NCBI GenBank assembly: GCA_963924565.1
Contig: OZ004608.1
Location: forward strand, 1,178,001 to 1,242,000
Length of the DNA stretch: 64,000 nucleotides
Direction: 5' to 3'
Origin: Ascidiella aspersa
Lineage: Eukaryota
Part shown: positions 5,201 to 61,700 of the stretch, in pieces
Layout: every line of letters begins with the position of its first letter
Numbering within the stretch: the stretch's first letter is position 1
Notes under the pieces: model-generated
What the model was told of the DNA's origin: nothing
The model's database searches: none
Seen by the model: the letters and a program-made list of their open reading frames with translations, nothing else
Position numbers and translations under genes: made by a program

Positions 5201-8200
5201 TTCCAATATGAAAAACGTTTACTGCGAACGCGTTATTGTAACCCACTCAATACTATTAGTGTGTAACACGTATGAGGAAATCGTATAGGTTTTGCGAAAC
5301 AAGTTTCAGATCCAGGTTCGAATCCCGTCCAAGCAAAACTTGAACTGACTCATGATTGACTTTGGAGGAGTGCCGGCTCCCTCCTCATCTCCCTTCTCTC
5401 CCTCCAACGCATCCTTGTACATCTCAAGAGGAGTGAGAGGAGGGGAGCGCTCCGGAGTGGCCAACCTCCCAACACTCCCGAGGTGCAAGTCAGAGAGAGC
5501 GTCCGAGAAGTCCTCCGAGTCGGAAGAAAGATCGGAAGAAAACTGGAAGAGACAAGATGCTGTTTTCACAGGGAAGCTTTCTAACTTAAGTTGTCGGAAC
5601 AAAAGTGAAATCCCAATAATCACTGGCGACGTTTGTCAACGCAAAGTTAACTGATCGATCACGTTGCCGAGATTTTCGATTAGAAATAATTAATAAGATG
5701 TGTTCGTTAAGAATGGTGGGAATGAGAGGGGGAAGTAAGCATTCTGCAAATAAACCTTACTTAACAGAACAGCCATGTTTTGTGTTGATAATTGAAATCA
5801 CATCACTACAAGTTATTTTTCACCATTGCTTAATACAGGACAATTTTTTTGACCTTAGAAATACAAAAATCTCCATGAAAGTTACCTCGAGGCCTTCGTC
5901 TTCTTTCGGTGATTCTGGCAAATTGATCGGCGTCATTGGAGCACTAGATTTTCGTCTTTTTCGCAAAGTATCTGCAAATGTTAAGGTTTGTACGAAAAGT
6001 AAGATATTTAACGTCTGAAAGTACAAGGTTTGTAAACAAGATCTCCAAAGTCTTAAAATATCGAAGGTTTGGTCAGACTTCTCACCCATGTACTTGAGGA
6101 AGTGTTCGTCGACCTCCCCGAAGCCGGGGGTGGCTTGCAGGAGCATGGCCATAGCGGCGCCGGTGACCCCCTGATGGAAGTGTAGGGGGAACTCGGGACA
6201 GCGGCGCACCAGGACCCCAGAGTTCCACATGGAACCAAGGTCCTCTGGACTCATGTTGATCCCAAAACAAGGGAAGGCGATCTCGTAAGGAGAGCATTCC
6301 ATATAAGCTGCAATAAGATGGTGCGTGAGTCGTGATAACATCTCATGTAATAGCATTTCCTTGTGATAGCATTTAATCATGATGAAATTACATAAAACAA
6401 ATCTCATCGTGATAACATTTCATCGTGATAAATTTACGTCACGGTAGCATCTCATGTGGTAAAATTACCTCACGATAGCATCTCATGTGATAACATTTCA
6501 TCATGATAAAGTTACATCACGTTAGCATCTCATGTAACATCATCTCACGGTTATGTTATGTCCTCTTAGTATTATTTCATGTTATTACAACTCACCGTGA
6601 AAGCTGCTCGAAAGGATTGTGTTTTTGACGTGAAGTGACACGAACAATGGGTAAGGAAGCGACGCCTCTTCGATGTATTCCCGCAAGTCGCTCAACTTCC
6701 TGTGCAAGTTCTACCAAATCAATTGAAACATATTTCTAAGAATTCAAGACTGCTTTTGTATGTGAACTTAAACTAGCGGCGACCAATCTACTTCCAAATG
6801 ATGACATGAGGTATATTATTACGGCCCGCGGATATTTACCTGGTGGATTTAAAATACAGTTATATATAGTTTGCGACACTAAAATTTTTGTCATGTTTGG
6901 GAATCAAGTGCATTTAACTATTGGATTTATTTAAATATACTTGCAGCACCTACTTGTTCTCCGAGCAGAGCCAAGCCAAGAGTGTAACCGGCAAAGTCAA
7001 CCAAAGAACTAGGTTGTGAGTATTTGCTCTTGTTCATCTTAATGTACTTCCTAGATAATAATGGTGTGCGAACAGTTATTTAATTTGACCTACAAACAAA
7101 CTTCCCAGGCCTAGCAGCTAATATAAACATAATGAATGGTAGTAAATTGATTTCGTGATTTTTAATTATAACTTACTTATAGTTTGCTGATAAACAATTT
7201 TTTTTATGTTTATTGTGATTTATTTATAATTCATTGCGAATACGTCCCAAATAATACGTAAACCAAGAAAAATAATATTAACTATTTAATGGCTTTTTAG
7301 GTATGAATCGTATGCAACAAATGTACACAAGTAAAGAATTAGCACAAGTACCACATTTTGCAAGTTTGGCGAAATAATTTAGTAGGAGTTTGTTGTTTTT
7401 ATAAAGTTTTGTTTTCTTTACACTTCTGTTAAGTTATCATAATTAAATAAATTAAAAGATAGTTGAAATAAAGGGACTCTGTCGATCCGGACGCCTCACC
7501 AGTAGTCCCTGTAGTGCCACGGATCTACCAACTTCCGATAAAGGTTGGATTTCATGCTGTTTCCCAAGGACGAATGAAGGTCATTTCTCTGGTCTGCTGC
7601 AAAGGAGTGTCGCCCATAGGCAGAAGAAATGTACCTGGAATGATATGGACTAATTTAAACAACTATAGTGAATAAAACACCAAACTAATAGGTTGTTAAA
7701 TCATATTACATTTGCTTAAAATAGATTTTTTATCACTTGCACAGTCATACTGACCAGGCGGACCCGGATAGGCCAGTGATGTAGGACATACAATCTATGA
7801 TCCCTGCATCTTCGAGCGCCTCCACACACCCCATTGTTCCGACCAGAGCTCTGAAACCTCCGCCAGATGTGCACAGCGAGATGATAGGGGTCTGAAGATG
7901 CAAAGCACGATGTTCTAGCGTTCGGTGGAAACGTGCTTGGCAACTCTCACCTCTTTAACAGTTTGCGGGCTTTCTTGCGGGCTGAAGATCTTCTTTAAGT
8001 TCTCAAAAACTGTCGGGATTCGCTTTTTCCTGAATTGTTTTTCTCCTTGACTCAAACCAACTCCGAGACGGAAATCCGGTTTCTCACTAAATTTAAACAA
8101 AGTTCGATAGAATCCTTTCTCGCTTGATTGATAAAATAACTTCGAACTAGTTTGTAAACTAAAGAAACTTACATTGCGGCAAACTTGAATTCAACGTCTA

Positions 8201-12107: not shown

Positions 12108-12181
12108 GCCTGTGTAGCTGAGTTGGTAGAGCGACGGTCCCGGTTTGACCTAGGTCGTGAGTTCGAACCTCATCACAGGCT
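12108..12181 (+). ncRNA. tRNA-like element (tRNA-derived SINE head or tRNA pseudogene) with A/B boxes and a T5 terminator
   Basis: Acceptor stem GCCTGTG/CACAGGC (7/7). A box TAGCTGAGTTGG. T-arm GTGAG-TTCGAAC-CTCAT. Variable loop AGGTC. Anticodon-like stem GGTC/GACC around a non-canonical loop CCGGTTT. TTTTT at 12183-12187. Confidence 0.7.
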
Positions 12182-13494: not shown

Positions 13495-15605
13495 ATGGAG
13501 CGACCTGAAAGCCCCAAGAAAAAATGCTACGACGTCCTCAAATATTATTGGATCGCTTACCTTAAAGCGCTCAGATCAAATCCGCTTCTCACCAAAGCGA
13601 TTACAAGGTGAGTTTACATGATCAGGGGAACTAAGTTGTTAGTAAGCGAGTTTAGATATTGTATTTAAGCAACTAGATATTGTAGCATTTCCCTTAGTTC
13701 ACAAACCTCGTTTGGCGTCAAACAGCAACAAACCTCTACAACACCTTTGTGGTTTACAAGTGCTTGACGAACTGTAAAGCTTGGTTTAAGCTGTCATAAC
13801 ACGAAGATTGTTTTTGTTTGTGACGTCACAGTTCGGTTCTTGGGATGGCGGGAAATCTGACAGCTCAGTTGATCAACAAACACAATGGAGTGACAGACGA
13901 GATATGTGGAAAAGCTGTGCGGAGGTGAGAGGGTTGTGGATTCGAATTCCGCCTGACACATTCATCGTCGGGTGTAAATTAATGTAGCCTGGGATTTTTA
14001 ACTTTTGTTGGGCCTTCGCATTTACCGAGGGTTGCAAGTTCGAATCCCGCCTCTGATTTGCTAAGATTGTCACCGTCAGACTTTAGTTGACAGGATATTA
14101 TGATCTTGAATAATAGCAAACCTATAAATACAGTACTCCTTAAACTAGCGCTATGCGTTTAATGATGATTGAAAACACTTTAAGTTACAAAGAATGTTTT
14201 CGAATTCTAACAATAACTGAGTCACAGCTGCATGCATTACCAACCAAGAATAATGACCCCCGCCCCCATATAACCCCCCAACAGTGCCCCCATAGATAAC
14301 CCCCAACATTAACTGTGCACCCCTAGGTACGGCGCGTTTGGTCTGGTTGTGTCAGGTCCAGTTGTCCACTTCTTCTACAAGTTTCTTGATCGCTTGATCC
14401 CTCCATCGAAGAGCAAGGAGGACTCGATCAAGAGGTTCTTCGCAGAGCGGCTTCTCCTCGCTCCATTCTTCTCACTCGTCTTCCACGCATTCATGTCGGC
14501 TCTCCAGGTTCGTCAATCAACTAACAACTTCACTTAGTTAGGGCTAATTGAAGTGGTGTTTGTGTTGTGCAGATGAGCCCACAATACTTGAGGTGGGATG
14601 TGTTGGGGTAAATATGATTGAAGCCACGCTGGGAGATGGTTGCGATGGAAACACCTGCTTGCTATATGCATGTAATTAAACAGAAAGTAATGGGCTATAA
14701 GGCAAACATTTATTCACATTGGGAAACTGATATGTTTTACTGTTGGATTTTTTATTCATTTATAATTTCCTAACCACTAATATGTGCATGAAAGTGCCCT
14801 TCTATTCTAATAAAAATAAACACCTTATGGCAACCATTTTCATGTACAGCACCAAATTATGTTTTAAAATAAAAGTATAGTAAACCGTTGGGCCACACTT
14901 GGCGTATACTCCTCAAAAACGGCCTAAACATTTGTGATGGCTGCTTTAGATTGGTGATAAACATCCATACACCAAACAACCCCATATGTATGCATCGAAC
15001 AAATTAATAACTATATTAAAAGGTCTTGAAACAGTAAAGGATGATTGTTTCAGTACAAGACGATCGCTCCAGTGGCAATGAGCGTTCGAGCTTACTTCTG
15101 GCCGACTCTGCTCATGAACTGGAAGTACTGGACAGTTCTGCAGTTCGTCAACGTCAACTACGTGCCAACTGAAGTAAGTCGCCCATGCGTCACCACTCAT
15201 GACGTAACCTTGCCGCCCGTGCGTCACCACTCGTGACGTAGCATTGCTGATTGATTCGATGACGAAACTACGTCCCATTTGTTACGTTTTGATGCTGTAT
15301 TTTCAACTAGATCAGCGCTTCTTTACCGTTGCGCCGTGGAAAGCCGCCAAGTGCGTCGCGGAAAAACAGAAAACGTGTTTTTATAGTACTTGTTCTACTA
15401 TTTTAATAACACAATTCTTCATTAAAATTTTGTGCGGTCCGCAAAGACCTTTCTGAGTTTGATTTTGGCCCGTGACTTGAAAAAGGTTGCCGACCCCTGG
15501 TTTAAGTGTTTGTTCTTTGTTTTTCAGCTGAAGCCTTTGTTCGGCAGTTTGTGTGGATTCCTGTGGAACATTTTGTTGTCAACCGGAATACTCCAAGCCG
15601 CTTAG
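13495..15605 (+). CDS. PXMP2: Peroxisomal membrane protein 2-like (PXMP2 / Mpv17-PMP22 family), 5 exons (13495-13607, 13832-13924, 14327-14507, 15054-15173, 15528-15605)
   Basis: YLKALRSNPLLTKAITSSVLGMAGNLTAQLI...RYGAFGLVVSGPVVHFFYKFLD...ERLLLAPFF...FWPTLLMNWKYWTVLQFVNVNYVP..LKPLFGSLCGFLWN. Contains family motifs P.LTK..TS, GP..H.FY, ERLL.AP and NW..W...QF.N..YVP. Phases are consistent. Confidence 0.88.
15313..15499. mobile_element. hAT/Charlie-type MITE remnant
   Basis: Ends in ttggcccg...aaaaggttgccgacccctg, a typical CAGGGGT-type terminus. The left end is degenerate and no TSD is seen. Confidence 0.45.
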
Positions 15606-17050: not shown

Positions 17051-18281
17051 TGGGGTAACACTAATTTACGGAATGATGAATGGTCGGAACGCTCACTAAT
17101 TTACGGAATTGAATGAATAGGGCCGAAATTAATTTGATGAATGGTCGGAACGGAATGAACATCGGAATAGAATCCACTGTCGGAATGGAATAAATGACGC
17201 TGTAGGAGCAGAATGAACTGTCGGAATGAAATGAACGAAGCTGTAGGAACAGAATGAACTGTCGGAATGAAATGAACGAAGCTGTAGGAACAGAATGAAC
17301 TGTCGGAATGAAATGAACGAAGCTGTAGGAACAGAATGAACTGTCGGAATAGAAAACGAAGCTGTTAGGGTTAGGGTTACAGTTCATTCCTAACTAGGGT
17401 TCCTCTCCGGGAATGTTTCGACGGGAAATTCCCGGGATTTCATGCGAATTAACAATCCTGAATCCCGGGAAATTTTTTTTATAATCCCGGGTATTCGGCA
17501 ACCTAGCAAAACTTAAAAAATATTGCCGTTTTTGATTAATATAAAGAAAAAAAATAGTACCAACCATGTTAACGTCGTTGCCTGAGTTGTTTTATTTGCG
17601 CTTACCAGCGGAAAAACCTGATTAAATTTATTTTAACAAAAAAAATGCGTCACAAATAAGGGTCCTGACTCGTATTAGAGAAGGTCTGGCGCTCCTTCAG
17701 TTATGAACGTATAAATTAATAAAAAAAAACGGTCTTTAAATACCGCATACCACAACGCAAATTATGCGGGTTAGCATTTGAGTGAGGGTGGGTCAAGCGG
17801 TATTATTAATAATAAACATAATAATATTTGACCCACGAAAGAAAGAACGCCCATAAATGAGCTAAATTAAATGTTTGAAGCTAAAATAAATAAAAAATAT
17901 CAACCTCAAAATGACATGATTTTATGTATAATTTTTTCGTCGGGATCCCGGGATTCCCGGGAAGTTTCATTTTTCAATCCCGTTTCCTGGGAGTGAAAAA
18001 ATCCGGGAAAAAGAGGAACCCTATTCCTAACCCTAAATGCTTCGTTCATCTCGTTCCGTCAGTTCATTCTAATCCGACAGTTCATTCTGTTCCTACAGCT
18101 TCGTTCATTTCATTTCGACAGTTCATTCTGTTCCTACAGCGTCGTTCATTTCATTCCGACAGTTCATTCTGTTCCTACAGCTTCGTTCATTTCATTCCTC
18201 ATTCCGTTCCGACCATTCATCAAATCAGTTTTGGCCCTATTCATTCAATTCCGACCATTCCGTAAATTAGTGTTACGCCCA
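17051..18281. mobile_element. Foldback/MITE-like element with long inverted arms containing ~39-bp internal tandem repeats and inner TTAGGG motifs
   Basis: Left end ggggtaacactaatttacggaatg matches the right end cattccgtaaattagtgttacgccc. Arms carry repeats of gctgtaggaacagaatgaactgtcggaatgaaatgaacgaa and their reverse complement. gttagggttagggtta at 17364 and ctaaccctaa at 18027. Confidence 0.85.
17395..18023. mobile_element. Non-autonomous hAT-superfamily element nested in the foldback element
   Basis: Perfect TIRs TAGGGTTCCTCT...AGAGGAACCCTA, a perfect 8-bp TSD TTCCTAAC (17387-17394 and 18024-18031) and subterminal CCCGGGA repeats. Confidence 0.9.
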
Positions 18282-19713: not shown

Positions 19714-22700
19714 ATGTCTGATTTTATGAAATTGTTTCGTCGCCAAAAGTCAGTGTCAAAAAATGAACCAAATGAAAATGTTTCAGCAAATAAAAATCAA
19801 AAGCCATCACACGAGGCAGCAGAGCTTAACTTTTCAGCATCAAATAATTCAATCGACTTCAGCGCGTCAAGAATCGATTCCTCGCAGCAAGAAGGTCTGA
19901 GTTTCATCGCTGAAGATAAAAGTGACGATGGTTTCAAGGAGCCAAAGGGTTGGAGGAAATCTCTCCGTAAACTTCGCTGGAAGAAAAAAGGGCCTGGGGT
20001 GAGCGTCTCGTCCGACAACATTTCACAAGTGCCGGCGATGTCGACCGAGAATATCAGCCGGGTGACCCCGGTCACTTCCCCGGGTCGGTTCAACAAGCGA
20101 TGGTCGTACTCTCCCGACCTTTGCGAGGAAAACGTTCCCGGTGCAAAAGAACTTCGAGGAACGCTGGAGAGAAAGTTGAGCGTTAAACTTGAGGTTAGCG
20201 AGGAAACATACGACGATGAACTCGGTCGTTACTCATTCCGACAAGCTCCGAACAATAGAAGCCACCGGAACTCACTCAAGCTGACAAGAGAGTCGAACAT
20301 CGAGGAGGATCGTTACAAACAGCTTCCGAGCATCGCAGGTGACGAGCAGGGATCCGTCCCTTCGATCCCAACCTCGTTAAACCTCCCCCAAGCTCTCAAC
20401 CAGATGTCGCATCTCTCACAAAGTGAACCATTCTTCAGAAACCAGCACGAGCACCTGCATCTGCAGAATAAAGGAAAATCATCCCCGGGTTTGACCGAGT
20501 GGGCTGAAGGAGAATTTGATCGACAGAGAATCAAACACAACTCGCCAAGACCGCATGATAAAGGTTTGTGGGATCTATGGCTTCTTATATATTTTCCTTC
20601 ATCTAAATTTCTAATGATTATATAAGCAAAATATATTATATATACTACCAGCATACTGACAGTAAAATTCGATAATGTTTGTTTCACAATTTTCTGTTAC
20701 AATTAATGCAGGCCTTGGCTTTTGTATTGTATAAGCAGACATAACACAAAAACAAAACTTGTAAAATATAAGTGATATACATTTATCTGGTTTTCACACC
20801 TTTTATATCCTTTTGTTTTTTTATTTTTGTAACTGATGATTAGATTGTTATCTATTAAATTATTTCTTTAGAATTATCTTTCTTGCTTTGCACAAGTAGT
20901 TCATTAATATTAAGATATGATTTTGCGCTATTCGAAAAGCAGACTAATTTTACTTAAAAGGTTGGTAAACAGCGTCATTGTGGTGGTGTGCAGTACGTGC
21001 TATTTTTTCTTATATTTAAGTGATAGGTCTATAAAATATAACCTTCTGTTCGTTGGGCAGCTTATGGAGAGGGAAGTTATCCTTACCAATCAAGCCACCA
21101 GCAGCCAACGTATGTGATGTTGTCACGAGGAGATGGGTCGCAGATGTTGAGCAACGTTGAGCAGGGATACTCGGCTGAAGAAACTCCAGAGGAAGAAGAA
21201 GAACCATATGGACTGCAGGTTAATATATAAGAACCTTATGGACTACAGGTTAATATAAAAACCTTATGGACTGCAGGTTAATATAAGAACCTTATGGACT
21301 GCAGGTTAATATAAAAACCTTATGGACTACAGGTTAATATAAAAACCTTGTGGACTGTAGGATGTATTAAAAAAACATTGAACAATATTTTAACATAATT
21401 TTATTTTAAATATTTAAGCAAACACAACCTTTGTATTGAGTATGACGTAACACTTCCATTGTGATGTAATACAAATGGATTGCAAAATGAGCATTACAAC
21501 AGTACATGTGTACTGCATTTTTGTTTAAATTTATGCTATTGCTATCGTTCGCAAAGATGACATGCGTCTAGCATTGTCAAAAACACAACCACGCATTTCA
21601 AGACTTGCTTCGTAGATGCAGCAGCAGGAACCGCATTGAAGTAAACCTGTGATAATAAAGCAAATTGTTGTTTTCTGTTAGTTTACTCAACATACGGTGC
21701 CCTTCGCAGACAAAAAAATGAACTAAACGCACATATCACACCAGTAAATGTAAGGGGTCCGCAACTATTTAACGGCATCAAAAAGGGCCACTGGTACAAA
21801 AAGGTTGAGAACCACTGATTTAGAGTTTATCAAATTTTATCAAAATAACGTCTTTGAAAACAAAATTAAATGCAAACTTTATTAGGTATTTTTATATAAA
21901 TCCCCTTTACTTTGTTTGTTGGGAGTTCTTACATTTTGCACAAACTATTTCCAGGACATTGATGAAGTGTTGACAAGTGCTGAGTCGAGGTCAGCGACCT
22001 TACGGAGCTTACACGGACAAAACTACGACCGTGTCACGCTTGAAACTCCACGAAGCCCTGAAGAAGACGCACTACACTCTGTGACAGGTAAACTCCTTTC
22101 AACAAACTATTAAAGTTAATTAGTAATGGCAAAATCATGTCACCTGTGCATTTGAATAAGTAGGGTATTTTCACACTAAACATTTTTGTTCACACCTTTA
22201 ATGACATAGTTTTTAACATTTAAAAAGTATAATTATGTGTATTAACAATTTGTGAAACTTTCAGCCACTTAACATGTTTTAATTGTGTGCCACAACTATA
22301 TTGTTTGTTAAATATTTTTTCTTTCCTATCAGGAGAATAATAATTGCAATCTCTTTAAATTATGTGATATACCAAAACCAAAGTTATTTGTCAACTTGTG
22401 AACATGTAATTAGTGTGTGTTGAATTGAAGTAACCTCGGAAATGTGATGGGGTCTTTGAAAGTAACCCCGGTAATGTTATAGGTTGAGTTCAACCAGGGT
22501 CATTGACCTATCAATATCCACAAATATTTGTTGTTTAGTTGTAAATAGTTCATGTTGTTTAAATAGTGACAAGAAAATGGGATCTGTAACACACATAATA
22601 CAACATGTGATTCCCTTTAAAAGAATCTTTGAATATCCTTGTTTTGATAAGCTGATAAGAGTAGGAATAGGTGAGGATGCCTTAATAGAGTAGTATACTC

Positions 22701-43597: not shown

Positions 43598-43690
43598 TCG
43601 TGACGCAATAGATCTAATTGTGACGCAATTGATCTAATTGTGACGCGATAGATCTTATTGTGACGCATTATATTTTATTATGACGTAACT
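43598..43690 (+). repeat. ~5 x 20-bp degenerate repeat
   Basis: Repeated gtgacgcaatagatctaatt-like units. Confidence 0.75.
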
Positions 43691-46797: not shown

Positions 46798-49700
46798 ATG
46801 CTGCGGATCACAACATTCATCCTGGGTCTGCTACTAGCCGTGGGGATTCCCCCGGGGATGTCCCAGGACCCCGAGGTGGGTAGTTATCCCCCTCTAGTGG
46901 ACATCGCGAAGTTCAAGCGCCCCTCAGTTGCCCCAGACACTGGGACCTGTGGGGTCAAGGCCCCCTCACCCTTCTGTGCTCCCGTGGACTCTGCTGAGGG
47001 GCTGGAGAAGCGATCTTGTAACATCCGGACTTGCAGCCAGAGATGTCCGGGAAGAGACAGGGACGAGGATCCGCACACCAGGTGCCGCTATGTGCAACAC
47101 TTAGCTGTGGTGGTTTTTAAAACCATTTAAATCTTTTATTACTTCAGGGCCGTGGTAGCGTTATCGCGAAATAAATTATTTTTAGCTGCACCTTCCTCAC
47201 AGATCCGAGTGTTAGAACAACTTCACTTCTGGGTTGCCATGTTTTGAACATCATACCAGGGGTGGGCGACTTTTCCTAGCCGCAGCCCCAAACCAATCTC
47301 AATAAGCCCATGTTACACTCGCTGCAGGAACAAGATGTGCGCTAAGCATAAACAAATTTTGCTTTTCATGTTGTCCAGAAGTTTGTAAAATACTTCGTAG
47401 GACTTGCTCTGGCGGGCCGGATATGGCCTGCGGGCCGAAGATTACCCCTGTTCCAGGACGTTGTTTATGACAATCGTGTCTATTGTTTGCAGCGATCCTT
47501 CTCGCTTCATCGAGTTGTTGGACGGTGAGAAAGGCCGATGCATCGATTACGACCACGTGGACACCAAGATCCGGGGAACCCCCTCGCTGCGGTTCTACAA
47601 CGACCCTGCTTGTGGGTTTTCCCCCGACCGAATCGTCAAGATGTCGAGGAGGGGTCAGTTCACAGCAACTGTGTGGCTCAAGCAGATGCCGAGGAACGCA
47701 GGGTGGGTGTGTTTTCGCTACAGTGTTCGCATAGGTAGTGACAGTTAAACAATAGGCATGTTGTTTAACCCCAATTCCATTGTTCAATCCCTCTTTTCAT
47801 TTGTTAAATTCGTCTATTCCATTGTAGAAATGGTTTGATCAAAATTTGCCAATGACGGATCAGAAACATGTTTTCGTGTTCTTATTTTAAGTTTGTTTGT
47901 TTGGTCCTTTATAAATTGTTTTTCCTTTTAACACTTGTGTCACTCTTATCCCACTAGTTATGAGCAGTTTTCACCCCATTGTTTAATTCTTCTTTTCCAT
48001 TGTTTCCTCTCCAGAGTGATCTTTGAGAAGGCTGCTGGTCGCCCGGGGCAACGCAAGGAGATAATCCTGACTATCATGGTCGGAAGCTTCAGCCTAATGA
48101 TCCAATACTGGGGGGTAAACGGTCGCCCCAACATCAAGGGGTTCCGGGCGCCGTTTCCCCCGGGCCAGTGGCACCACCTTGCCATCCAGGTGAGATGGTA
48201 GCAACACTTTGCTCGTGGAGTGCTAGGTTTAGATGCTTTTAGTAACCCCCAGTAGACGTATTTACCGACGATTCTTATTATTGTTGAAAGTTCAGATGCA
48301 CAACTTGGGAAAGTATTTAATTTCGAAAACAATAACTTCAAATTACAGGCTAAAATAAGTTAGGTAAAACGTCATTTTATAATTTATTGTAGGCTCCTGC
48401 CCAATTGTTGTGATGGTATCATAAAATTAACCTGTGTATTGAGCGCAAAAAGGGTTGCTAGAATAAAACTATAAAGATGTTTACTTTTACCATAATGACT
48501 ACAGCTTTATTTCCACTTAACCGGAACTTTTTCCCGAGGTTTACGGTCGTGACATCAGCATCTTTATCGACGGTCCTGGTCCGGATGGAACTCCATTTCT
48601 GGTCGATAAACTCCCCGTTGCTATGCAAGACGTCAACATCATGCCGGTTATCAGGATCGGGCAGCGGTTTGGAGGTGAAATATGTGACCTTGAATTTAAC
48701 TTAACAGGATATATAACCAATTTGACCTTGGAACGCACTTTAACATAATATATGACCTTACACGTCTTGTGACCTTAAAATTGAATTAAGTTAGACATAT
48801 GCCTTTAAAGTTTGTGGCGAGATTTGTTCAATACTGCATCCCTGATATTTAAAACCAGGGTAAAATTATAGGTTTAAAATATAAGCAGTACTTTTATAAT
48901 TGAAGTTTTAGTGTTTTGCAATACAAGATATTATTTGGCGTCGTTGTACAAATCCTTATTATCCACCAACAATGATTTACTCGTGACGATTAAAGCGTCC
49001 GTAAAATTAACCTTAATAAAATGTTTGACCTTGAAATACTGTATTTCCTGCCTCGACCTTCAGCGTGGAACGAATCTTCAGAACTGGCGACTTTTCTTAA
49101 GAGGGAATTCCCCTCTGTGAACAGTAAGTGCGCATGTCACCACTTGGTGTCGCTACATGTCATGTATTCCTATTGTCAGCTGGACCGCCATTTTGTGTCA
49201 GAAATTTGACATTTTGTTTCTATTCTGAAGAAAGTACAAATGTGTTCAATGTCCATTTTGTTTGGTGGTTTGTGGTTTCGGGTGTCATATAGTAGAATAT
49301 GTGTATTTGTTACGTCATTTACATCGTATAATGTCATTGTTGTTACGTCATTATGGTGACTGGCATAATTTTCCGAAATAGTAGATTTTTGCAAGATTGA
49401 AATGCAAAAACAATGGAATTTGTAATCCCATCGTGTTATATCATGTTAAGGTTACCAACAGGTTAACAAAGATCCCTCTTAATAGAATAGACCAGTAAAC
49501 ATCTAAGGCGAGTTAACGCACTTTGTAATTATTCTACGGTGTTGGTAGATGGAATTTATCGCAGTAATAACCCTGTAAGTACCGTAGGGCAACCAGGTGG
49601 CACTATATGATTACAAATTGTGCTTCATCAGGTCAAAGCAGAAATATAAGCAATTAAAATGCACGAAGCAGAAGCGCAAGTAAAAGGCGATAAGAATGGT

Positions 49701-52700
49701 GACGTCTAACATAACCACAGGCACATGCTCGCAAAGACGTGTGTGACTGATGCAAAACAATAATAACTGGAGGTTTGCGCTTCAAAGTACGCTGGGTGTA
49801 AAAGCGTGCTATGAGGAGTAATGTGGCATAAAGCCCAAATCTCGATTGAGCCCGACATTGATGGCATCAAACTTTTTGATTATGTTTTGTTCGACTGTGA
49901 GCCTCGCTCGTGTGCCATTCCTTATTTTGTTGATCAATTTAATTTGAAAGTCTTTTATACTTTGTTCATAAGCACTTTTATCGAACTGCAAAAACAATGG
50001 AATTTAATACTCTTAAATCATGTTACATTATGTCAAGATCACCAACAGATGATTCCTAAGTATTATAGACCAGCAAACATTGCATCTAAAGCAATTTAAC
50101 GCACTTTATCAATATTATACGATGCTAATAGATGGAATTTACCGTTGTGACAAGCTTAAGTTGGATGGTGACCCTATATTACCGTGTTTCAGGCTCGAGC
50201 CAGTATGTTGGCTGGATGCAGGACTTCCGTTGGTACGACAAGGTTCTAACAAACCGTGAGATACAAGAAGTAGCTACCGGTACTTTCCCCCATATCAACA
50301 TTGTGTCAAGGTGCTTGTGTCCAGCTGGATTCCCAAGGGTTCATCCAATAGAAGAAAGGTTTGTTGCTGAGCGCCAACTAACAGTTTGTGTTATTTAAAT
50401 AATATTTTTGTTATTTGTTTTTTAAACTTCTTATAAACTTGCGTTTCACAACGAATTGATTTTCCGACCATTGACATTAAATTTCCTAAATGCCACGATT
50501 TAAAACTTGTACTGTCCTGTAACGCTTTTAATACATAATTTAAAACGTTTACTTACGCCTTTTACCCAGTAGTTGTTTTGACCTTGAAACAGCCATCTGT
50601 AACCTTCAACCAGTGGCTTTTGAATTTGAAACAGTAACTTGTGCCCTTGCCTCTCTTTAGATTTTGTATTCCCAACGGCGTTCCTGACACGGATACGTCA
50701 CAACGTGAATTACGTCTCGACATCGACGCACATCCGCTTGATTACATCACCGATGATGACGCAAGCACCACGTGGATTTCGTCATCGGATATTTACATGC
50801 CAGGAGGCCTCACGATCACAATCGACCTTGAGAACGGGGAATACCAGGTGAGACATTCAGTAGCTCAGCAAAACTTGATGTTTCTGTGCTGATAGGAACT
50901 TTTGTCGAAGCAGGTTGATAGTTTAATGAAGTCAACTATAATAGAATAACAGTCAAATATACTAGAATAAAAAGTTTAGCTTTTATTAACCCAGATATTC
51001 TATGTGGTGATGCACTTCTACAGCTTAAACCATATCGTTATTTTTTCTGCCTTGCTGATATATTTATCGACGTCCTTAATGCGTTCTTTGCCTCAGATCT
51101 TCTACGTGGTGATGCACTTCTACAGCCCACAACCGAAGATGATCACCATCAGTCGGATGTCAAACTCGACCGGGGGAGACATGGAGGTCTGGGGATACTT
51201 TGCAGACGACTGTGACATCCGCTTCTCACTGGAGAACAATGTTCCTCTCTACACTTCAACCTCCATCGGATGCCAGCAGTTTCCTCCGTAAGTAAAACTT
51301 AATATTACATAAGTTTTAGACCATATTTAACCAAAAAACTTGGGATGCACTGCATAATTTGCCTTTATATGATTTATTGGTTTACGTCTGCTTTAGATAA
51401 AGACAAGCGCTACCTTAGGAATACCTAGCTTGTCTTATTTTAAAAGCTTTTCTTTCCTTGGTTATATATTATGTTATTTCCAGATATAACGTTCCACATG
51501 GTCATAGCTTGTGTCATTTCAAGACCCGGTCTATCACTTGGTCATACCTTGTGTTATTCACAGAATGGACGAGATCTTGTACCGGAACAGCACGGTGAGG
51601 TTCACTTTGCTGCAGAAGGATCCAACTCCAAGACCTGGTCACCACGATTTTTACGGAACTCCTGAACTTATGGACTTTGTTGAGGCGACAAAGGTTTGGC
51701 AGATTCGACGTTATTTGGTTCATTTATCATGGAGCAAATACAGGGTTTCTTAGTATTTCGGAGCCGACCTTTTTAGAGCGACTTTTCTAACGAATGTAAT
51801 TGCTAAAATCTTGTGGGAAATAGGTTGTTAAACTAATTGATTTATGTAAAAATTAAAATATGTTTTCATTGTTGGTTGTTTTACATTACTGCAGCACTTG
51901 TAGCTCCAGGGCGCTCGGCAGAACTTACAGAAATTGATAAATTTCCAACTGTTTTGTAGATATGAGCTTATTAAGCGATTTTAACGAAGCGATCATTTTA
52001 CTCAGGTCCAAGTTCGCTTCCAATACCAATACTTCACACAAGCGCCCGAAGTTCATGTTCAACATCAATATTACGGACTTACTGGGATCCAAGTCGTCGG
52101 GAAGTAAGACGACTTTATGTTACGACTGGACAGTCCTCAGCCGGTCAGCTAAGCATTATAATTAACAAAATCCCAAACAATAACCTTTAAAAATGAACAC
52201 GACACTAGTGTCTGACGATTCACCACTTTGCACCGGGTTTGACTTCGATTCGGTATTATCGGACATCATAAGTTAAATTAATAATTAATGAAAACGAAAA
52301 TAAAAGCTAAATCTAAGCGTTTATTATTTTTGTGGCCCGACATTGACTTTAAACCTGTTGTTATTATCCTAGATGCAACTGCCACGGTCATGCTAAAACA
52401 TGCGACATCGATGCTAAACCCTACAAATGCAACTGCCTTGAAAGCAGCTTCACTGAGGGGAACATGGTGAGTGGATCAAAACTAAGCTCGAACTGTTCAT
52501 CAACCTATTAAAAATCGCTTTATAGCCGTAGAGAAGCCAAACAAATATTAAAGTCTTATGTTTTTGTCTGAGCTAACGTTTATGTCAACTTCTGTGATAT
52601 AATAACAGGTAGAAAGTAGAAAATGGAAGATAAATATTTGTGAAAATACTAAAATAGACCAAATGGTAACGACAGCGTGGGACGAATGATGACGTTTATA

Positions 52701-55700
52701 ACATAGGTCAAGATTGTTTACAGAGACCTATCGTTTAAATTCAGATTTAGAATAGTTTTGTGTTGTGCTTAAGTTGCCCACTTATATTTCAGTGCGAGCG
52801 CTGCATGCCTCTGTACAACAACAAGCCTTACCACCAAGGTGACAACACCTCGCCGTACAAGTGCCAGAAGTGCAACTGCCACGGGCATGCTGACAGTTGC
52901 CACTACCAACCTGCCATTGACACCCACCCTGGCGATTATACACAGGGAGGAGGCGGGGTTTGCGACAACTGTAAGCATCACACAACAGGTTGGTGTACAT
53001 ATGAACACCTAAGGTGCTCCTATATTATCAACTGTAGGCATCACACAACAGGTGAGCTCAATATTTGTAACGACAGGAGGTGGTCGAGTTTTTACCTTAC
53101 CTACTGAGATGTGGTGATCTCCAACTTTAACCTGAAGTAACCCCACTTATTGGGTTGTCATTTTAACCTACGATGACCATTTGACATAAAGTAACCCCAC
53201 CCATTGACATGTAATTTTAACCTACGCTTACCTTTTGACCTATAGTAACCCCTACCTTTCCAGGGCTCCACTGCGAGGAATGTACAGAGTTGTTCTTCCG
53301 TGAACCCGACAAGGATTTAAACGCCCGAGATCTTTGCAAACCTTGCGCTTGTAGAAAGGCTGGAACGGTCAATGGAACAAGCTTGTGTGAACAGGTGACG
53401 CATTGTAATTCACACGACATAACGGTAATTGACTCACAACAATAGTAACTTCAGTGTTACCATTAAACCAAATGATGATATATTTAAATATCATAATGAT
53501 AATCAAAGCACCACAATTGAAACTAATGCATTGGCGATCGAATAATTTTCGCAAAAGTTCTCAAAATATTTATATCTTGTTGTTTATTACGTCATTTTCA
53601 TAACTAATTACGTCATTCCACCAGATCGGAGGTCAGTGCTTGTGCAAGCCGAAAGTGACGTCGCGCAGATGCAACGTGTGCGTCGATGGATTCTACAAAC
53701 TTCAAATGGAAAACCTGGACGGATGCGAGGAATGCGAATGTTTCCAAGCTGGGACCGTTAACAGGAGCTTCACTTGTGACCAGGTGAAGTTGCCCCTTTA
53801 GCTTGTGACCAAGTGAGACAACCTCTTTAGCTTGTGACCAAGTGAGACAACCTCTTTACCTTGTTACCAAGTGAGACAACCTCTTTAGCTTGTGACCAAG
53901 TGTGACAACCTCTTTAGCTTGTAACCAAGTGAAACATCCTCTTTAGCTTGTAACCAAGTGAGACAACCTCTTTAGCTTGTGACCAAGTGAGATTGTCCCA
54001 TTAGCTTGTGACCAAGTGAGACAACCTCTTTAGCTTGTGACCAAGTGAGATTGCCTCTTTAGCTTGTGACCAAGTGAGACAACCTCTTTAGCTTGTAACC
54101 AAGTGAAACATCCTCTTTAGCTTGTAACCAAGTGAGACAACCTCTTTAGCTTGTGATCAAGTGAGATTGCCTCTTTAGCTTGTGACCAAGTGAGACAACC
54201 TCTTTAGCTTGTGACCAAGTGAGACAACCTCTTTAGCTTGTGACCAAGTGTGACAACCTCTTTAGCTTGTAACCAAGTGAAACATCCTCTTTAGCTTGTA
54301 ACCAAGTGAGACAACCTCTTTAGCTTGTGACCAAGTGAGATTGTCCCATTAGCTTGTGACCAAGTGAGATAACCTCTTTAGCTTGTGACCAAGTGAGATT
54401 GCCTCTTTAGCTTGTGACCAAGTGAGATAACCTCTTTAGCTTGTGACCAAGTGAGACAACCTCTTTAGCTTGTAACCAGGTGAGACAACCTCTTTAGCTT
54501 GTGACCAAGTGAGACAACTTCTTTAGCTTGTGACCAAGTGAGACAACCTCTTTAGCTTGTGACCAAGTGAAACAACCTCTTTAGCTTGTGACCAAGTGAG
54601 ACAACCTCTTTAGCTTGTAACCAAGTGAGACAACCTCTTTAGCTTGTAACCAAGTGAGACAACCTCTTTAGCTTGTGACCAAGTGAGATTGCCCTTTAAG
54701 CTTGTGACCAAGTGAGATAACCTCTTTAGCTTGTAACCAAGTGAGACAACCTCTTTAGCTTGTAACCAAGTGAGATTGCCCTTTAAGCTTGTGACCAAGT
54801 GAGATAACCTCTTTAGCTTGTAACCAAGTGAGACAACCTCTTTAGCTTGTAACCAAGTGAAACAACCTCTTTAGCTTGTGACCAAGTGAGATAACCTCTT
54901 TAGCTTGTGACCAAGTGAGACAACCTCTTTAGCTTGTGACCAAGTGAGACAACCTCTTCAGCTTGTAACCAAGTGAGACAACCTCTTTAGCTTGTGACCA
55001 AGTGAAACAACCTCTTTAGCTTGTGACCAAGTGAGACAACCTCTTTAGCTTGTAACCAAGTGAAACAACCTCTTTAGCTTGTAACCAAGTGAGATAACCT
55101 CTTTAGCTTGTAACCAAGTGAGACAACCTCTTTAGCTTGTAACCAAGTGAAACAACCTCTTTAGCTTGTGACCAAGTGAGATAACCTCTTTAGCTTGTGA
55201 CCAAGTGAGACAACCTCTTTAGCTTGTGACCAAGTGAGACAACCTCTTCAGCTTGTAACCAAGTGAGACAACCTCTTTAGCTTGTGACCAAGTGAAACAA
55301 CCTCTTTAGCTTGTAACCAAGTGAGACAACCTCTTTAGCTTGTGACCAAGTGAGACAACCTCTTTAGCTTGTGACCAAGTGAGATAACCTCTTTAGCTTG
55401 TGACCAAGTGAGACAACCTCTTTAGCTTGTGACCAAGTGAGACAACCTCTTTAGCTTGTGACCAAGTGAGATTGCCCTTTAAGCTTGTGACCAAGTGAGA
55501 TAACCTCTTTAGCTTGTAACCAAGTGAGACAACCTCTTTAGCTTGTGGCCAAGTGAGACAACCTCTTTAGCTTGTGACCAAGTGAGATTGCCTCTTTAGC
55601 TTGTGACCAAGTGAGATAACCTCTTTAGCTTGTGACCAAGTGAGATTGCCTCTTTAGCTTGTAACCAAATGAGACAACCTCTTTAGCTTGTAACCAAGTG

Positions 55701-58700
55701 AGACAACCTCTTTAGCTTGTGACCAAGTGAGATTGCCCCTTTAGCTTGTGACCAAGTGAGATAACCTCTTTAGCTTGTGACCAAGTGAGACAACCGCTTT
55801 AGCTTGTGACCAAGTATACAACCTCTTTAGCTTGTAACCAAGTGAGACAACCTCTTTAGCTTGTGACCAAGTGAGATTGCCCCTTTAGCTTGTGACCAAG
55901 TGAGATAACCTCTTTAGCTTGTAACCAAGTGAGACAACCTCTTTAGCTTGTGACCAAGTGAGATTGCCCCTTTAGCTTGTGACCAAGTGAGATAACCTCT
56001 TTAGCTTGTGACCAAGTGAGACAACCTCTTTAGCTTGTGACCAAGTGAGACAACCTCTTTAGATTGTAACCAAGTGAGACAACCTCTTTAGCTTGTGACC
56101 AAGTGAGATTGCCCCTTTAGCTTGTGACCAAGTGAGATAACCTCTTTAGCTTGTCACCAAGTGAGATAACCTCTTTAGCTTGTGACCAAGTGAGACAACC
56201 TCTTTAGCTTGTAACCAGGTGAGACAACCTCTTTAGCTTCTAACCAAGTGAAACAACCTCTTTAGCTTCTAACCAAGTGAGATTGCCCCTTTAGCTTGTG
56301 ACCAAGTGAGATAACCTCTTTAGCTTGTGACCAAGTGAGATTGCCTCTTTAGCTTGTGACCAAGTGAGACAACCTCTTTAGCTTGTGACCAAGTGAGACA
56401 ACCTCTTTAGCTTTTGACCAAGTCAGACAACCCCTTTAGCTTGTGACCAAGTGAGACAACCTCTTTAGCTTGTGACCAAGTGAGATAACCTCTTTAGCTT
56501 GTGACCAAGTGAGACAACCTCTTTAGCTTGTGACCAAGTGAGACAACCTCTTTAGCTTGTGACCAAGTGAGATTGCCCTTTAAGCTTGTGACCAAGTGAG
56601 ATAACCTCTTTAGCTTGTAACCAAGTGAGACAACCTCTTTAGCTTGTGGCCAAGTGAGACAACCTCTTTAGCTTGTGACCAAGTGAGATTGCCTCTTTAG
56701 CTTGTGACCAAGTGAGATAACCTCTTTAGCTTGTGACCAAGTGAGATTGCCTCTTTAGCTTGTAACCAAATGAGACAACCTCTTTAGCTTGTAACCAAGT
56801 GAGACAACCTCTTTAGCTTGTGACCAAGTGAGATTGCCCCTTTAGCTTGTGACCAAGTGAGATAACCTCTTTAGCTTGTGACCAAGTGAGACAACCGCTT
56901 TAGCTTGTGACCAAGTATACAACCTCTTTAGCTTGTAACCAAGTGAGACAACCTCTTTAGCTTGTGACCAAGTGAGATTGCCCCTTTAGCTTGTGACCAA
57001 GTGAGATAACCTCTTTAGCTTGTAACCAAGTGAGACAACCTCTTTAGCTTGTGACCAAGTGAGATTGCCCCTTTAGCTTGTGACCAAGTGAGATAACCTC
57101 TTTAGCTTGTGACCAAGTGAGACAACCTCTTTAGCTTGTGACCAAGTGAGACAACCTCTTTAGATTGTAACCAAGTGAGACAACCTCTTTAGCTTGTGAC
57201 CAAGTGAGATTGCCCCTTTAGCTTGTGACCAAGTGAGATAACCTCTTTAGCTTGTCACCAAGTGAGATAACCTCTTTAGCTTGTGACCAAGTGAGACAAC
57301 CTCTTTAGCTTGTAACCAGGTGAGACAACCTCTTTAGCTTCTAACCAAGTGAAACAACCTCTTTAGCTTCTAACCAAGTGAGATTGCCCCTTTAGCTTGT
57401 GACCAAGTGAGATAACCTCTTTAGCTTGTGACCAAGTGAGATTGCCTCTTTAGCTTGTGACCAAGTGAGACAACCTCTTTAGCTTGTGACCAAGTGAGAC
57501 AACCTCTTTAGCTTTTGACCAAGTCAGACAACCCCTTTAGCTTGTGACCAAGTGAGACAACCTCTTTAGCTTGTAACCAGGTGAGACAACCTCTTTAGCT
57601 TGTAACCAAGTGAGACAACCTCTTTAGCTTGTGACCAAGTGAGACAACCTCTTTAGCTTGTGACCAAGTGAGATTGTCTCTTAAGCTTGTGACCAAGTGA
57701 GACAACCTCTTTAGCTTGTGACCAAGTGAGACAACCTCTTTAGCTTGTGACCAAGTGAGACAACCTCTTTAGCTTGTGACCAAGTGAGATAACCTCTTTA
57801 GCTTGTGACCAAGTGAGATTGCCCCTTTAGCTTGTGACCAAGTGAGACAACCTCTTTAGCTTGTGACCAAGTGAGACAACCTCTTTAGCTTGTGACCAAG
57901 TGAGACAACCTCTTTAGCTTGTGACCAAGTGAGATAACCTCTTTAGCTTGTGACCAAGTGAGATTGCCTCTTTAGCTTGTGACCAAGTGAGATTGCCTCT
58001 TAAGCTTGTGACTACAAACTAAAACCAGCGTTTTTCAACCTGTGCACCATAAAATGTTTTTTGGTGTAACGATGGCAACGGAAAATGTATTTAAAAACAT
58101 AAATATACTCGCTTCGCTTGCTTGCCCGATGCCCAGACATAAAAAAGGTTTTGAAACACTGAACTAACATGCAACTTTAAAAGTTTTGCATCTAAACTTT
58201 GTTACCCGCAGCGAACAGGAAAGTGCGATTGTCGAGGAAATGTTCGCGGCCGGAAGTGCTCCGATTGTCTCTTTGGGTTCAAGAACTTGACCGATAGTAA
58301 CCCCGATGGTTGCGAGGAGTGCAACTGCAACAGGACGGGGTCAGTGAACCAGTTCTGCAACCCACACAACGGGCAGTGCGTCTGCAAGAACAATGTGCAG
58401 GGTGAGTCTACCAACGTTATATGGGGAAGTCCCTGGTTGGGTGGGTATAAACGTTTTCTTAAACCTGATTAAATAATATTGGAAAATCAATAAAGCCAAC
58501 AATAAATCACAATTAGATTTCATTGAAACATGCATGACGCATTTAAAACAAAATTAACGTCATGGGTCGCCGATTTGTAAAAAATATTCAAAGAAAGTGA
58601 TTTTTTTATTCAAAGAAAGTGATTAACAGCACATTTTAAATCAATCAATAACTATACATTGATTACAATACTGTAGCAATTCTAAGAACGTTTTGAATTT

Positions 58701-61700
58701 TAGACGTTTTGTATTTTAAACAACTATACTTGGTGTTTTAAATCCGCGTGTTTGAACATGTGGCCGCCAAAAGCACAACTTTTGTTTCCTTCAGGAATAT
58801 TTTGCGACGAGTGCCAGGACGGGTTTTGGGGACTTTCTCTCGCCGGATGTCGTCCTTGCGGATGTGACGTTGCCGGAAGTGAGTCACGCACCGTTTGCGA
58901 CAAGGTCACGGGTCAGTGCGTTTGCAAGGCGCACACTCAAGGACGAACTTGCAACGAATGTGTCGATGAGTTTTACAACTTGGACGCGAACAACAGGATG
59001 GTTAGTTGGTTGGAATGCTCTATGTGGGAAGCAAGTTACAACATTCAATTGTCAAACTTTCAATGTTTTTTTTAGTTTTTACACACGTTTTCTTTTGTGT
59101 AGTTCAGTGGTCACTCTTTAGAACCTAAGGGCTGTAGAGTACTAAGAACAACCTGTTAAAACAGTCTTCTGAAATAACTTATCTGCTCCGCTTGCTTTTA
59201 GTTGATTGATTATTTATAATACTCACCTATGTGAAGACACTGACTATTTTTACAACTGAGGTGCTTTAATTAATAAATTATATTTTAAATGGAAAACATT
59301 TTTATTCTTTTTCTGATGAGCCTTGCTGTGAACAAACCTCCAACGTTGCAGTTTTACTCCGCCATTGTTTAGCATGTGTGACGTAACACAGGGTTGCGAG
59401 TCGTGCACGTGTGACGATCGAGGAACTGTGAATGGGTCGCTGGTGTGCGACAAGGTTCAAGGTCAATGCAGCTGCAAGGTCAACGTCAAGGGCAGGGTTT
59501 GCAACTTGTGCCGGGGAAACACATTCGGGTTAAAGTTCAACCTGGGGTCAGGATGTGAACCCTGCAACTGTGACCCCAAAGGTCAGTGAACTCAAATAAA
59601 CACAAACATGAATACATTAACTTAAAGGAATAAGTTGTATTTGACCAATGGTAAAGTTGTGGACCCCAAAACTATGACCCAAAGATGAATTGTTGTGATG
59701 TCAACGTTTTCACTTGTATAAACTAACAAGTTGCAATACAATATCCGGTGCTAATGAACCTGATATTTATCACCTTAGAATTATATTTTTAAAGCAATTT
59801 ACAAACGACCGATGTTGTATTAAAGTTTGGAGAGCTGTTTTGGCTCCACATTTTTTTACCAAAGTTGAGTTTGCGAAGAAATGCCGACTTCGGGTCGGCA
59901 GCGATACCTTAGTATCGGACGGTAAGCGATACAACCATCTTAATCCCCTAATAGCATCCTTCACTCCTTAATACAACTGTACACCCCCTAATATCACCCT
60001 ACATCCCCAGGAACGGCGTTGGGCGACCAGCTGTCCCCCCATGAGCTTGTGTGCGATTCCAACAGTGGTCAGTGCGCGTGTTTGGCGAGCAGAGAAGGAA
60101 GAAGGTGCGACCAGTGCTCGCCCGGTAAGCTCAAGGCAATATATTTTACTATCTCCCTTGTATTTTTATATTGATATGCGATATTTGTTGTTTCGGCACT
60201 CGCCCGAGAAGAATATTTAAACGCAACCATGGTAAAAATGAAAACACATGCTTCAAAACTTTATGCGAGTCTAAGTTTTATGTCAGGATCCACGGCAAAT
60301 CCATATTTACAAGCCAAGAATGTTCCAAAAGCTTAAATGTCTATTAAACAAGAACTTCGTTCGATCAAGATTATTTCTTATTCATTAAAGTCGATTATAT
60401 CCCTACATTTCCTCCCAGGCTTCTACCTCCCATCGAAGAACGAAACGGGATGTCTGGTGTGCGACTGCCACCCAGTGGGGAGCACGAGTCCTGTTTGTAA
60501 CAATGAGACCGGGATGTGTCCTTGCAAACCACACGATACTGGGGCAGGTATGATGTACATAGCTGTAATACTTCGTTAATAGATGTGCCCTTGCACAGGG
60601 GCAGGTAAAACTTGTTTTAATAAAAAGTAGTTGATTTTATTTCTTCACAGTTATTTGTTAATGAGAACTAACTACATGTGTAGCTCTGAGTTTCATTATG
60701 GTAAAATTAACTACTTTAATTATTTAATGGCTCAAGAACGTTAAGTAAATACCAACATTTTTGGCGAAGGTTTAATTTACAAGGATTCCAGTTTAATTAT
60801 AAATTTGTCCTATTATGTTGGTTAAAACACAATATATTAAACCCTCAGGTACTCAATTTAAAGAGAATAAATTTAAAATTACGAGGTACCTGAAGGTCAC
60901 TTAAACACCGCCAAGGTCAGTATCGTTTCGCTCTACGGATCACATGACGCCACTTCCTGCAGGTTTGACCGGAAGGAGGTGCGACCAGTGTGACGTCACA
61001 TTCTGGAACTTCCACTCTTTGTTCGGATCGTGCGAATCTTGTGGATGTGACGTAGCCGGAAGTGAAAACGACGAGTGCAACGTCATCACAGGTACCAGAT
61101 GACGTAATTGTTTCGTAATTTCCGCCTTTTGCAAAAAATATAGATGTAATAAAATTGATTCAACCTCGCGCTTGAGTATTTATCAGTGTTTTCAAGTTTA
61201 TTGCAAAATCCAATGGATTGCTTAATTTAAATATTATTCGAATAGAATCACAAATTAATACAAATTATTAATGGTATAAAGCATCAGTGTAAATTAATCA
61301 TCATCCCTAGAAAGGTAACTTCTACCACGACAAGGCAACTGAAGTAAGGTCAATTACAATGTCAATAAACCACCTTCTTTGACATAGATTATAATTTATT
61401 CTTATAGTACTTAATGTAATGCGCAAATATCCAGGTCAGTGCAGTTGCAAGGGGAATGTTGTTGGAAAGCAGTGTGACTCGTGCCGACCCGGATCAAGCC
61501 AACTGAGCGCCTCCAACCCGATGGGTTGTTATTCTCACCCCGAGCAACAAGCTGCCCCCTCAGAAGTAAGTGGGAACACAAACACTAGTGGTGTATTGAG
61601 AATCTACACCCGGGAAGTTCTTCGCATTTCTTTTATCTTTCTTGGTTTGCTTTTATCATTTTTATTTCTCAAACGGCTAAACTCAGGTCAACTTTTCCCC

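Follow-up and report, generated by a model that had tools for sequence, protein, structure and literature searches.

The original account of mirages, tandem repeats that straddle the exon-intron boundaries of lancelet genes, is reportedly that of Canestro et al. 2002. These junction-spanning minisatellites, the duplicated splice sites of which are silent, are described in the lancelet Adh3, TnC, globin and PGBD5 genes (PMC3087553, PMC3902484), and their origin is called unclear (PMC3087553). In humans the 37-bp variable number tandem repeat (VNTR) in intron 7 of F7 has a first unit that spans the exon 7 donor, and it is the most upstream of the identical donors that is selected (PMC1557585). 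Two further strands of work concern the formation of introns from such repeats: in the Rogers model (cited in PMC3087553) an intron is gained via tandem duplication of an AGGT-containing exon segment, while for internal tandem repeats at exon-intron boundaries in human segmental duplications novel introns and the activation of cryptic sites are considered possible (PMC2812944). The subject here is a series of tandem repeats in a stretch of the genome of the ascidian Ascidiella aspersa (contig OZ004608.1, positions 1,178,001 to 1,242,000; hereafter the window), many of which concern the splice junctions of an ARHGEF10-like gene and an usherin/laminin-like gene.

The window comprises 64 kb without N on a 39.8-Mb contig, 1.2 Mb from the contig end, in a genome of 308.6 Mb. 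Head-to-tail repeated units are found within its genes by Tandem Repeats Finder (TRF), by a local repeat search and by shuffle tests (2000 shuffles each), complemented by blastn. A preliminary description of this DNA held that tandem duplications repeatedly copy splice junctions and thereby generate decoy splice sites, and such duplications are indeed real and recurrent: at least seven repeats are strictly junction-spanning, in that exon sequence and splice site are copied together, and three donor arrays hold 4, 12 and ~122 decoy donors, respectively. The explanation favoured here, with a probability of roughly 0.6, is that the repeats belong to the mirage type, as minisatellites of introns, each specific to its locus, and as short tandem duplications, brought about by survivorship plus geometry. 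The two genes that carry most of the evidence are as follows.

19714 (start codon) to 42083-42085 (stop codon TAA), plus strand: ARHGEF10-like gene, 24 exons placed
46.8 kb to the window end, plus strand: usherin/laminin-like gene with Laminin_N, laminin EGF and fn3 matches

The exons of the ARHGEF10-like gene were placed by tblastn with the Phallusia mammillata protein P0154, followed by phase-aware refinement of the GT and AG sites. The full-length best protein matches of this gene are all ascidian (Phallusia mammillata P0154, Ciona P0152, Clavelina P0153 and Styela P0004/P0151), with identity to P0154 ranging from 49-89% in the main exons and standing at 39% in one short N-terminal exon. 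Eight introns in a row, from 26516>27869 to 30776>32005, are borne out by a spliced transcript contig of 3,529 nt (run X3), and against these the splice refinement ranked the right pair first in five cases, tied first in one and second in one, and missed the array intron. The 18 exons of the usherin-like gene from 50662 on were placed by open reading frames, domain logic and a splice heuristic, and are less certain. Exons were searched singly, not as a joined gene model. The median intron length is 354 nt (40 mapped introns), and about one fifth of the mapped donors conform to GTRAGT. One ARHGEF10-like intron, 33063-33559, is of the GC-AG type (CAG|GCAAGT), as demanded by the reading frame and the Phallusia alignment.

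The repeats on the donor side of these two genes are the following.

21199-21361, plus strand: 28-bp x5.6 array (TRF), the first unit consisting of the last 20 nt of ARHGEF10-like exon 2 and its donor
30714-31983, plus strand: 72/73-bp x17.6 array (TRF) at the donor of ARHGEF10-like exon 19
33959-41435, plus strand: 34-bp x224 satellite, starting 13 nt after the donor of ARHGEF10-like exon 23 (ends 33945)
52966-53053, plus strand: two copies of a donor and the 23 nt of laminin-EGF exon before it (exon ends 52988), at a distance of 63 nt
53773-58012, plus strand: 29-bp x145 satellite with 11 nt of exon end (exon ends 53783) and donor GTGAAGTTGCC
60513-60607, plus strand: exon end and donor (exon ends 60547) with an internally deleted second copy ~60-68 nt downstream

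The donor copies reported earlier at 21202, 30711, 52968/53031, 53770 and 60522/60582 are all borne out. The 28-bp array contains the end of exon 2, which the Phallusia alignment sets at 21218 (the next residues being DIDEVL), and with it five CAG|GTTAAT sites, namely one authentic donor and four decoys; read-through of the array meets stops. In the 72/73-bp array each unit consists of the last 63 nt of exon 19 followed by GTAATAGCC, the 9 nt after each donor not being exon-derived, and among the 13 CAGGTAAT sites are the authentic donor and 12 decoys. The copies at 52968/53031 are identical at 24 of 25 positions over their distance of 63 nt. For the 29-bp satellite the unit matches the exon end and donor at 19/22 positions, a score reached by 0/2000 shuffles; the satellite holds 122 AAGTGAG decoys and is followed by 199 nt of ordinary intron. 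The deleted copy at 60522/60582 retains a core of 13/14 identical positions (1/2000 shuffles). As had also been described, a 7.5-kb satellite lies just past a donor: the 34-bp array has neither exon sequence nor GTRAG in its units, and 488 nt of ordinary intron stand downstream of it. Its GC skew is +0.42 to +0.45, and exact 341-nt copies within it, 932 and 3336 nt apart, point to recent higher-order amplification.

Which of the identical donors is used is indicated at the 72/73-bp array, where reads and contigs were aligned to the interval 26300-32250. The transcript contig (one assembled contig) passes from the first donor, 30776, to 32005 and so skips 1228 nt, the intron spanning 30777-32004. 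The use of duplicated sites was not seen in this interval, the sole transcript evidence being for the authentic first donor of this array; the raw RNA run X4 gives 0-4 reads per junction and 0 at 30776>32005. One DNA contig (run X2) passes from 30979 directly to 31492 and lacks 512 nt of the array, which may reflect a shorter allele or an assembly collapse.

On the acceptor side of the two main genes a corresponding set is found.

22856-22943, plus strand: 33 nt of intron, the acceptor and 10 nt of ARHGEF10-like exon 4 (starts 22934), present twice at a distance of 45 nt
47774-48012, plus strand: family of a 21-nt unit, with an array at 47774-47825 and relatives up to the acceptor (heuristic exon start 48015)
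50992-51126, plus strand: the acceptor of the Laminin_N exon (starts 51097) with the 30 nt that follow it, present twice at a distance of 102 nt
51495-51558, plus strand: two 24-nt copies, 40 nt apart, the second ending 5 nt before heuristic exon start 51564
53126-53252, plus strand: 54-bp x2.2 array ending 11 nt before exon start 53264
59945-60008, plus strand: weak 20-bp x3.2 array (65% matches) ending 2 nt before exon start 60011

The acceptor copies placed at 22427-22933 are recovered by the repeat search with a score reached by 0/2000 shuffles; the duplication at 22856, which generates an in-frame, stop-free decoy acceptor at 22888|22889, has older copies at 22428-22491. Those at 50991/51094 are 31/33 identical, and here too the decoy acceptor that results, at 50995, would add 34 aa in frame and without a stop. 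In the authentic 51097 exon the Pfam Laminin_N match sets in at residue 1, leaving the 34 decoy residues unmatched. Likewise confirmed are the acceptor-proximal copies at 51471-51563 (21/24 identical, 0/2000 shuffles), the spacing of which, 40 nt, is not a multiple of 3, and the repeats at 53130-53263 and 59940-60010, which both abut an acceptor. A repeat reported at 50560-50660 exists in weak form (4/2000 shuffles) and ends 27 nt before the heuristic acceptor, while the 21-nt unit family is absent from the earlier list. The motif AGTAACC recurs in the acceptor-side repeats, and a branch-point role for it was considered and rejected, since TAAC occurs at 0.45 in the last 60 nt of introns vs 0.44 per 60 nt of interior (40 introns).

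The usherin-like gene holds two other peculiarities. A 583-bp-spaced segmental duplication, 49399-49558 / 49983-50141, provides a second copy of a LamG-like exon (81% over 59 nt), which could make the two a mutually exclusive exon pair or one of them a pseudo-exon. In addition, the LamG-like reading frame is split at 50168-50192 by a 25-nt GT...AG stretch with a one-nt shift; this stretch is below the usual intron size, which leaves a frameshift, a slip in the assembly or an intron of exceptionally small size.

Two smaller genes near the beginning of the window are associated with repeats of the same sort.

~14.3-15.6 kb: Mpv17/PMP22-like gene, with a Mpv17_PMP22 match on exon 15054-15173
14262-14329, plus strand: 24-bp x1.9 array and diverged third copy, spanning the acceptor of a Mpv17/PMP22-like exon (starts 14327)
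15180-15247, plus strand: 34-bp x2 array starting 6 nt after exon end 15173, directly behind GTAAGT
4.5-8 kb, minus strand: gene with exons from open reading frames only
5972-6085, minus strand: 114-nt intron made of ~2.7 copies of a 40-43-nt unit ending in the acceptor, between exons placed by open reading frames only
6330-6535, minus strand: 16/31-bp array ending ~22 nt before the acceptor of an exon (first base 6307) placed by open reading frame only

The acceptor copies described at 14250-14326 are present, the diverged third copy over the acceptor being 15/19 identical (1/2000 shuffles); the family of the host gene shows on the next exon (Mpv17_PMP22). The array at 15180 does not figure in the preliminary description. 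On its motifs the gene on the minus strand is tentatively taken here to be a phospholipase A2. The acceptor copies at 5972/6015 are found on that strand with an exact core of 10 nt (23/2000 shuffles), between exons predicted from open reading frames only, and use of the decoy AG at 6016-6015 would shift the frame. A tRNA gene at 12108-12181 is the sole Rfam match in the window (RF00005, 43.4 bits).

Taken as a whole, 14 of the 16 repeats originally listed are located as stated, at or near a supported or plausible exon boundary. Exon sequence together with a splice signal is contained in the units at 21199, 30714, 53773, 52966, 50992/51094, 22856/22901, 14262 (3 nt of exon) and 60513/60581, and those at 33959, 15180, 53126 and 59945 only abut a junction, with no exon sequence and splice signal in the unit. 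The claim that nearly every repeat sits at an exon boundary is not upheld. Of the TRF arrays of the window (period >=10, score >=50, n=21), 9 or 10 have a junction at a distance of up to ~22 nt, the remainder being made up of five mid-intron arrays (26959, 30374, 50930, 58688 and 61731), five intergenic ones (13154, 16533, 17164, 18044 and 43600) and one at a stop codon. TRF edges do conceal some junction copies: in both the 29-bp and the 24-bp array a diverged copy covers the junction. The features away from junctions, of which the first five serve as counter-examples, are these.

26737-27025, plus strand: family of a 28-nt repeat, in mid-intron 26517-27868, 220 nt from the donor
30374-30426, plus strand: exact 27-bp x2 duplication, 195 nt from the nearest junction
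50930-50970, plus strand: 21-bp x2 array, 82 nt from the nearest junction
58688-58718, plus strand: 16-bp x1.9 array, 73-76 nt from the acceptor
61731-61767, plus strand: 18-bp x2.1 array, 165 nt from the nearest junction
42085-42413, plus strand: 50-bp x6.6 array with its first base on the third base of the ARHGEF10-like stop codon, in 3' UTR (untranslated region) or intergenic sequence, with no splice site

The entry that fails outright in the original list is that of acceptor repeats at 26740-27024. The repeats are real, and they are in mid-intron, because 26516 is followed directly by 27869 in the transcript contig as well as in the alignment of the Phallusia protein, and there is no exon at 27025. 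The 50-bp array does start at the stop codon as described, its first base being the last base of TAA 42083-42085. Every unit of this array carries CACGTGAC and GATTGG, and every unit of the array at 43600-43685 carries TGACGCAA, which resemble transcription-factor sites; both arrays sit in the interval that separates the 3' end of the ARHGEF10-like gene from the start of the usherin-like one. The 41-bp arrays 17164-17365 and 18044-18199 are mutually reverse-complementary (local score 249), as in an intergenic foldback or transposon-like structure. High-copy dispersed repeats are found within the ARHGEF10-like gene at 28091-28489 and 29946-30027, with word depths of 10^4-10^5 in the DNA runs; they are present in RNA reads too, and the second of them ends ~30 nt upstream of the acceptor of the exon starting at 30058.

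The arrays themselves are of local origin. Searched against the 308-Mb genome, the 29-, 34-, 72- and 54-bp arrays find their own locus only, with match counts that are lower bounds, and a dispersed repeat, transposon or introner origin is rejected for these four on account of their locus specificity. Derivation from exon sequence was likewise considered for the 34-bp satellite, the 34-bp x2 array at 15180 and the 54-bp and 20-bp arrays, as was derivation of the 50-bp array from the stop region, and no significant similarity was found in either comparison. The window is unusually rich in expanded arrays, with seven of at least four copies in its 64 kb vs three in a 300-kb systematic sample of three contigs (63 arrays, no exon annotation; P=0.0004). 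From a random genome sample come a 28-bp x7 array with GTAAGT in each unit (L018:7214-7410), a 22-nt unit that starts with GTGGGT and ends with TTTCAG (L024:5966-6006), and a segment filled entirely by a 429-bp satellite (L028:1-10000).

What proportion of such duplications would fall near a junction by chance? In the null model each array is collapsed to two units and placed uniformly within its own intron, with freedom to enter an exon by at most one unit minus one base, since junction-spanning copies are viable. This null alone puts ~35% of local duplications near junctions; with introns as short as these, about a third are expected there, so that the visual impression of the window greatly overstates any targeting. 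For a hand-compiled set of 17 events, overlap with a junction is seen in 5 vs 4.3 expected (P=0.41), a position within 6 nt in 8 vs 4.8 (P=0.04), and the Fisher combination of the per-event probabilities gives P=0.35. An exon-blind uniform scan of both genes, based on ungapped self-similarity at offsets of 12-150 with a score >=24, yields 19 intronic clusters, for which overlap (7 vs 5.5, P=0.25) and proximity within 6 nt (7 vs 6.1, P=0.38) are close to expectation. The geometry of uniform placement thus explains the spanning class, and the approximately twofold excess near junctions is carried by events 7-13 nt away. In the scan, enrichment near junctions depends on the threshold: it is seen for distances up to 13 nt and not for strict overlap or for distances up to 6 nt.

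These figures bear on the possibility that there is no real association at all, with the appearance of one created by exon guesses and selective listing in a gene-dense window of short introns. The false acceptor at 27025, the five mid-intron and five intergenic arrays left out of the list, the expected near-junction fraction of ~35% and the Fisher value all speak for it. It is nonetheless quite improbable, given that the exon-blind scan still finds 12/19 events near junctions vs 6.7, and that the exon content of at least seven repeats is directly visible.

The survivorship explanation runs as follows. Replication slippage and unequal exchange would seed duplications of 20-100 nt anywhere in a gene, and selection would purge the copies that lie wholly inside exons. 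Copies in introns or across junctions would survive, because splicing keeps to the site contiguous with the exon, and as this would be the first donor or the last acceptor, the extra copies would become intron. With a median intron length of only 354 nt and long repeat units, a considerable part of the surviving duplications would touch or abut a junction, and with the window lying in a stretch unusually rich in expanded arrays, several seeds would have expanded to between 6 and 224 copies. What is left of the excess, twofold at 7-13 nt, may be due to diverged edge copies, together with slower decay beside constrained splice signals.

A number of points weigh against this account. The excess within 13 nt is not predicted by geometry alone: it amounts to 11 vs 5.4 expected in the hand list (P=0.0013, n=17), to 12 vs 6.7 in the uniform scan (P=0.004, n=19) and, in the ARHGEF10-like gene alone, to 7/10 vs 3.5 (P=0.006). 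Edge-copy divergence and constraint-slowed decay, which are invoked to absorb it, are seen in two arrays only and extrapolated to the rest. That the decoys are silent is a supposition, the RNA evidence consisting of a single transcript contig and of 0-4 raw reads at each junction, the usherin-like exon map is heuristic, and the unannotated 300-kb sample provides no test of junction association.

The same excess is the main argument for junction-focused mutation, in which breaks or slippage favour exon-intron edges, perhaps through a link to transcription, splicing or chromatin. The twofold enrichment within 13 nt is found at all four score thresholds of the scan (P 0.0003-0.008 at the other three), it is also present in the RNA- and homology-mapped gene alone, it affects the donor side (7 events) as well as the acceptor side (5 events), and two further junction-adjacent arrays lie outside the earlier list (15180 and 47774-48012). 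Set against this, there is no excess for strict overlap or within 6 nt, the 13-nt cut-off was picked after the data had been seen, the usherin-like gene taken alone gives no significant near-junction excess, and one event of the 7-13 nt class, 24331/24453, is AT-rich, ~65% identical and probably due to chance. Moreover, five duplications are clearly mid-intron, and no signature specific to such a mechanism was found in the window. As a general explanation junction-focused mutation is unlikely, if still worth entertaining; that it has acted in this window, as the preliminary description proposed, carries a low likelihood, and no new junction-targeted mutation system is shown by these data. The broader version, a junction-targeted tandem duplication common to lancelets and this ascidian and perhaps tied to co-transcriptional splicing, is distinctly unlikely; if it does operate, the twofold excess within 13 nt would be its footprint, and the decoy splice sites that it would keep seeding at exon edges could feed the origin of new exons as well as the growth and sliding of introns.

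A different question is whether the copies are kept for a function, either as splicing enhancers or decoys, as alternative in-frame sites, or as a tunable protein repeat in a beta-propeller. In support of this, three of the four spacings earlier given as stop-free multiples of 3 (45, 63 and 102 nt) do create in-frame, stop-free alternative sites. The second donor of the 52966 duplication, at 53051|53052 (21 aa), is moreover closer to consensus than the authentic one (GTGAGC vs GTTGGT), and repeats rich in G-runs stand 7 nt past the donor at 25176. The fourth spacing does not hold, as the '72' array alternates between 72 and 73 nt and its frame is consequently not kept. The proposed excess of in-frame survivors is not borne out either: multiples of 3 account for 5/12 near-junction events (P=0.37) and 4/7 junction-spanning ones (P=0.17), as compared with 3/7 of the distant events, and are thus at chance level. 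The extra 21 and 34 residues would break the laminin EGF and Laminin_N domains, respectively, the 28-bp array meets stops when read through, and the sole transcript uses the authentic donor. Functional selection is accordingly a very improbable account of the repeats, and survivorship plus geometry remains the preferred one.

How, then, do the ascidian repeats compare with the systems already described? A full-text literature search of limited coverage found no tunicate mirage report. The preliminary description had nominated these repeats as an undescribed system, a status they do not have, as the same kind is already known, on the portions of the literature considered here, from the lancelet mirages and the human F7 intron 7 VNTR. 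In a Rogers-type intron, donor and acceptor come from one and the same AG|GT, present in two copies, and its removal gives back the original exon. The intron 30777-32004 resembles one in being made up almost entirely of copied exon sequence; unlike one, it has 9 nt after each donor that are not exon-derived, and intron gain by this route is rejected for it because the acceptor, TTTAG|GAACAAC, reads AG|GA and not AG|GT. With the internal repeats of human segmental duplications it shares minisatellite-sized units at exon-intron boundaries, although the human cases, as described in the sections of that report used here, were found by paralogue comparison, often with alternative transcripts, and the ascidian case is without such evidence.

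The resemblance to F7 is closer, since the 72-bp array also uses the first of its near-identical donors. The F7 result comes from 50 minigene constructs and the ascidian one from one assembled transcript, and the acceptor-side duplications of the ascidian have no counterpart in the parts of the F7 report drawn on here (PMC1557585). Arrays of this type offer natural test cases for how the spliceosome chooses one site among 5, 13 or ~120 near-identical ones.

It is with the lancelet mirages, as far as the extracts consulted describe them, that most features are held in common. In both, tandem units of tens to ~150 bp lie across the edge of an exon and repeat its AG or GT signal, at 5' as well as at 3' boundaries, and the copies at the edge escape homogenisation. 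In the mirages the authentic site is the one spliced and its copies stay silent, a pattern with which the one ascidian transcript agrees at a single array. Length or somatic instability is a further trait of the mirages, of which the DNA contig that skips 512 nt may be an ascidian sign, unless it is an assembly collapse. What sets the present case apart is the host, together with two far larger arrays, of 145 and 224 copies (4.2 and 7.5 kb). A dozen mirages within 64 kb of an ascidian genome suggests that repeats of this kind are more widely spread among the invertebrate chordates.

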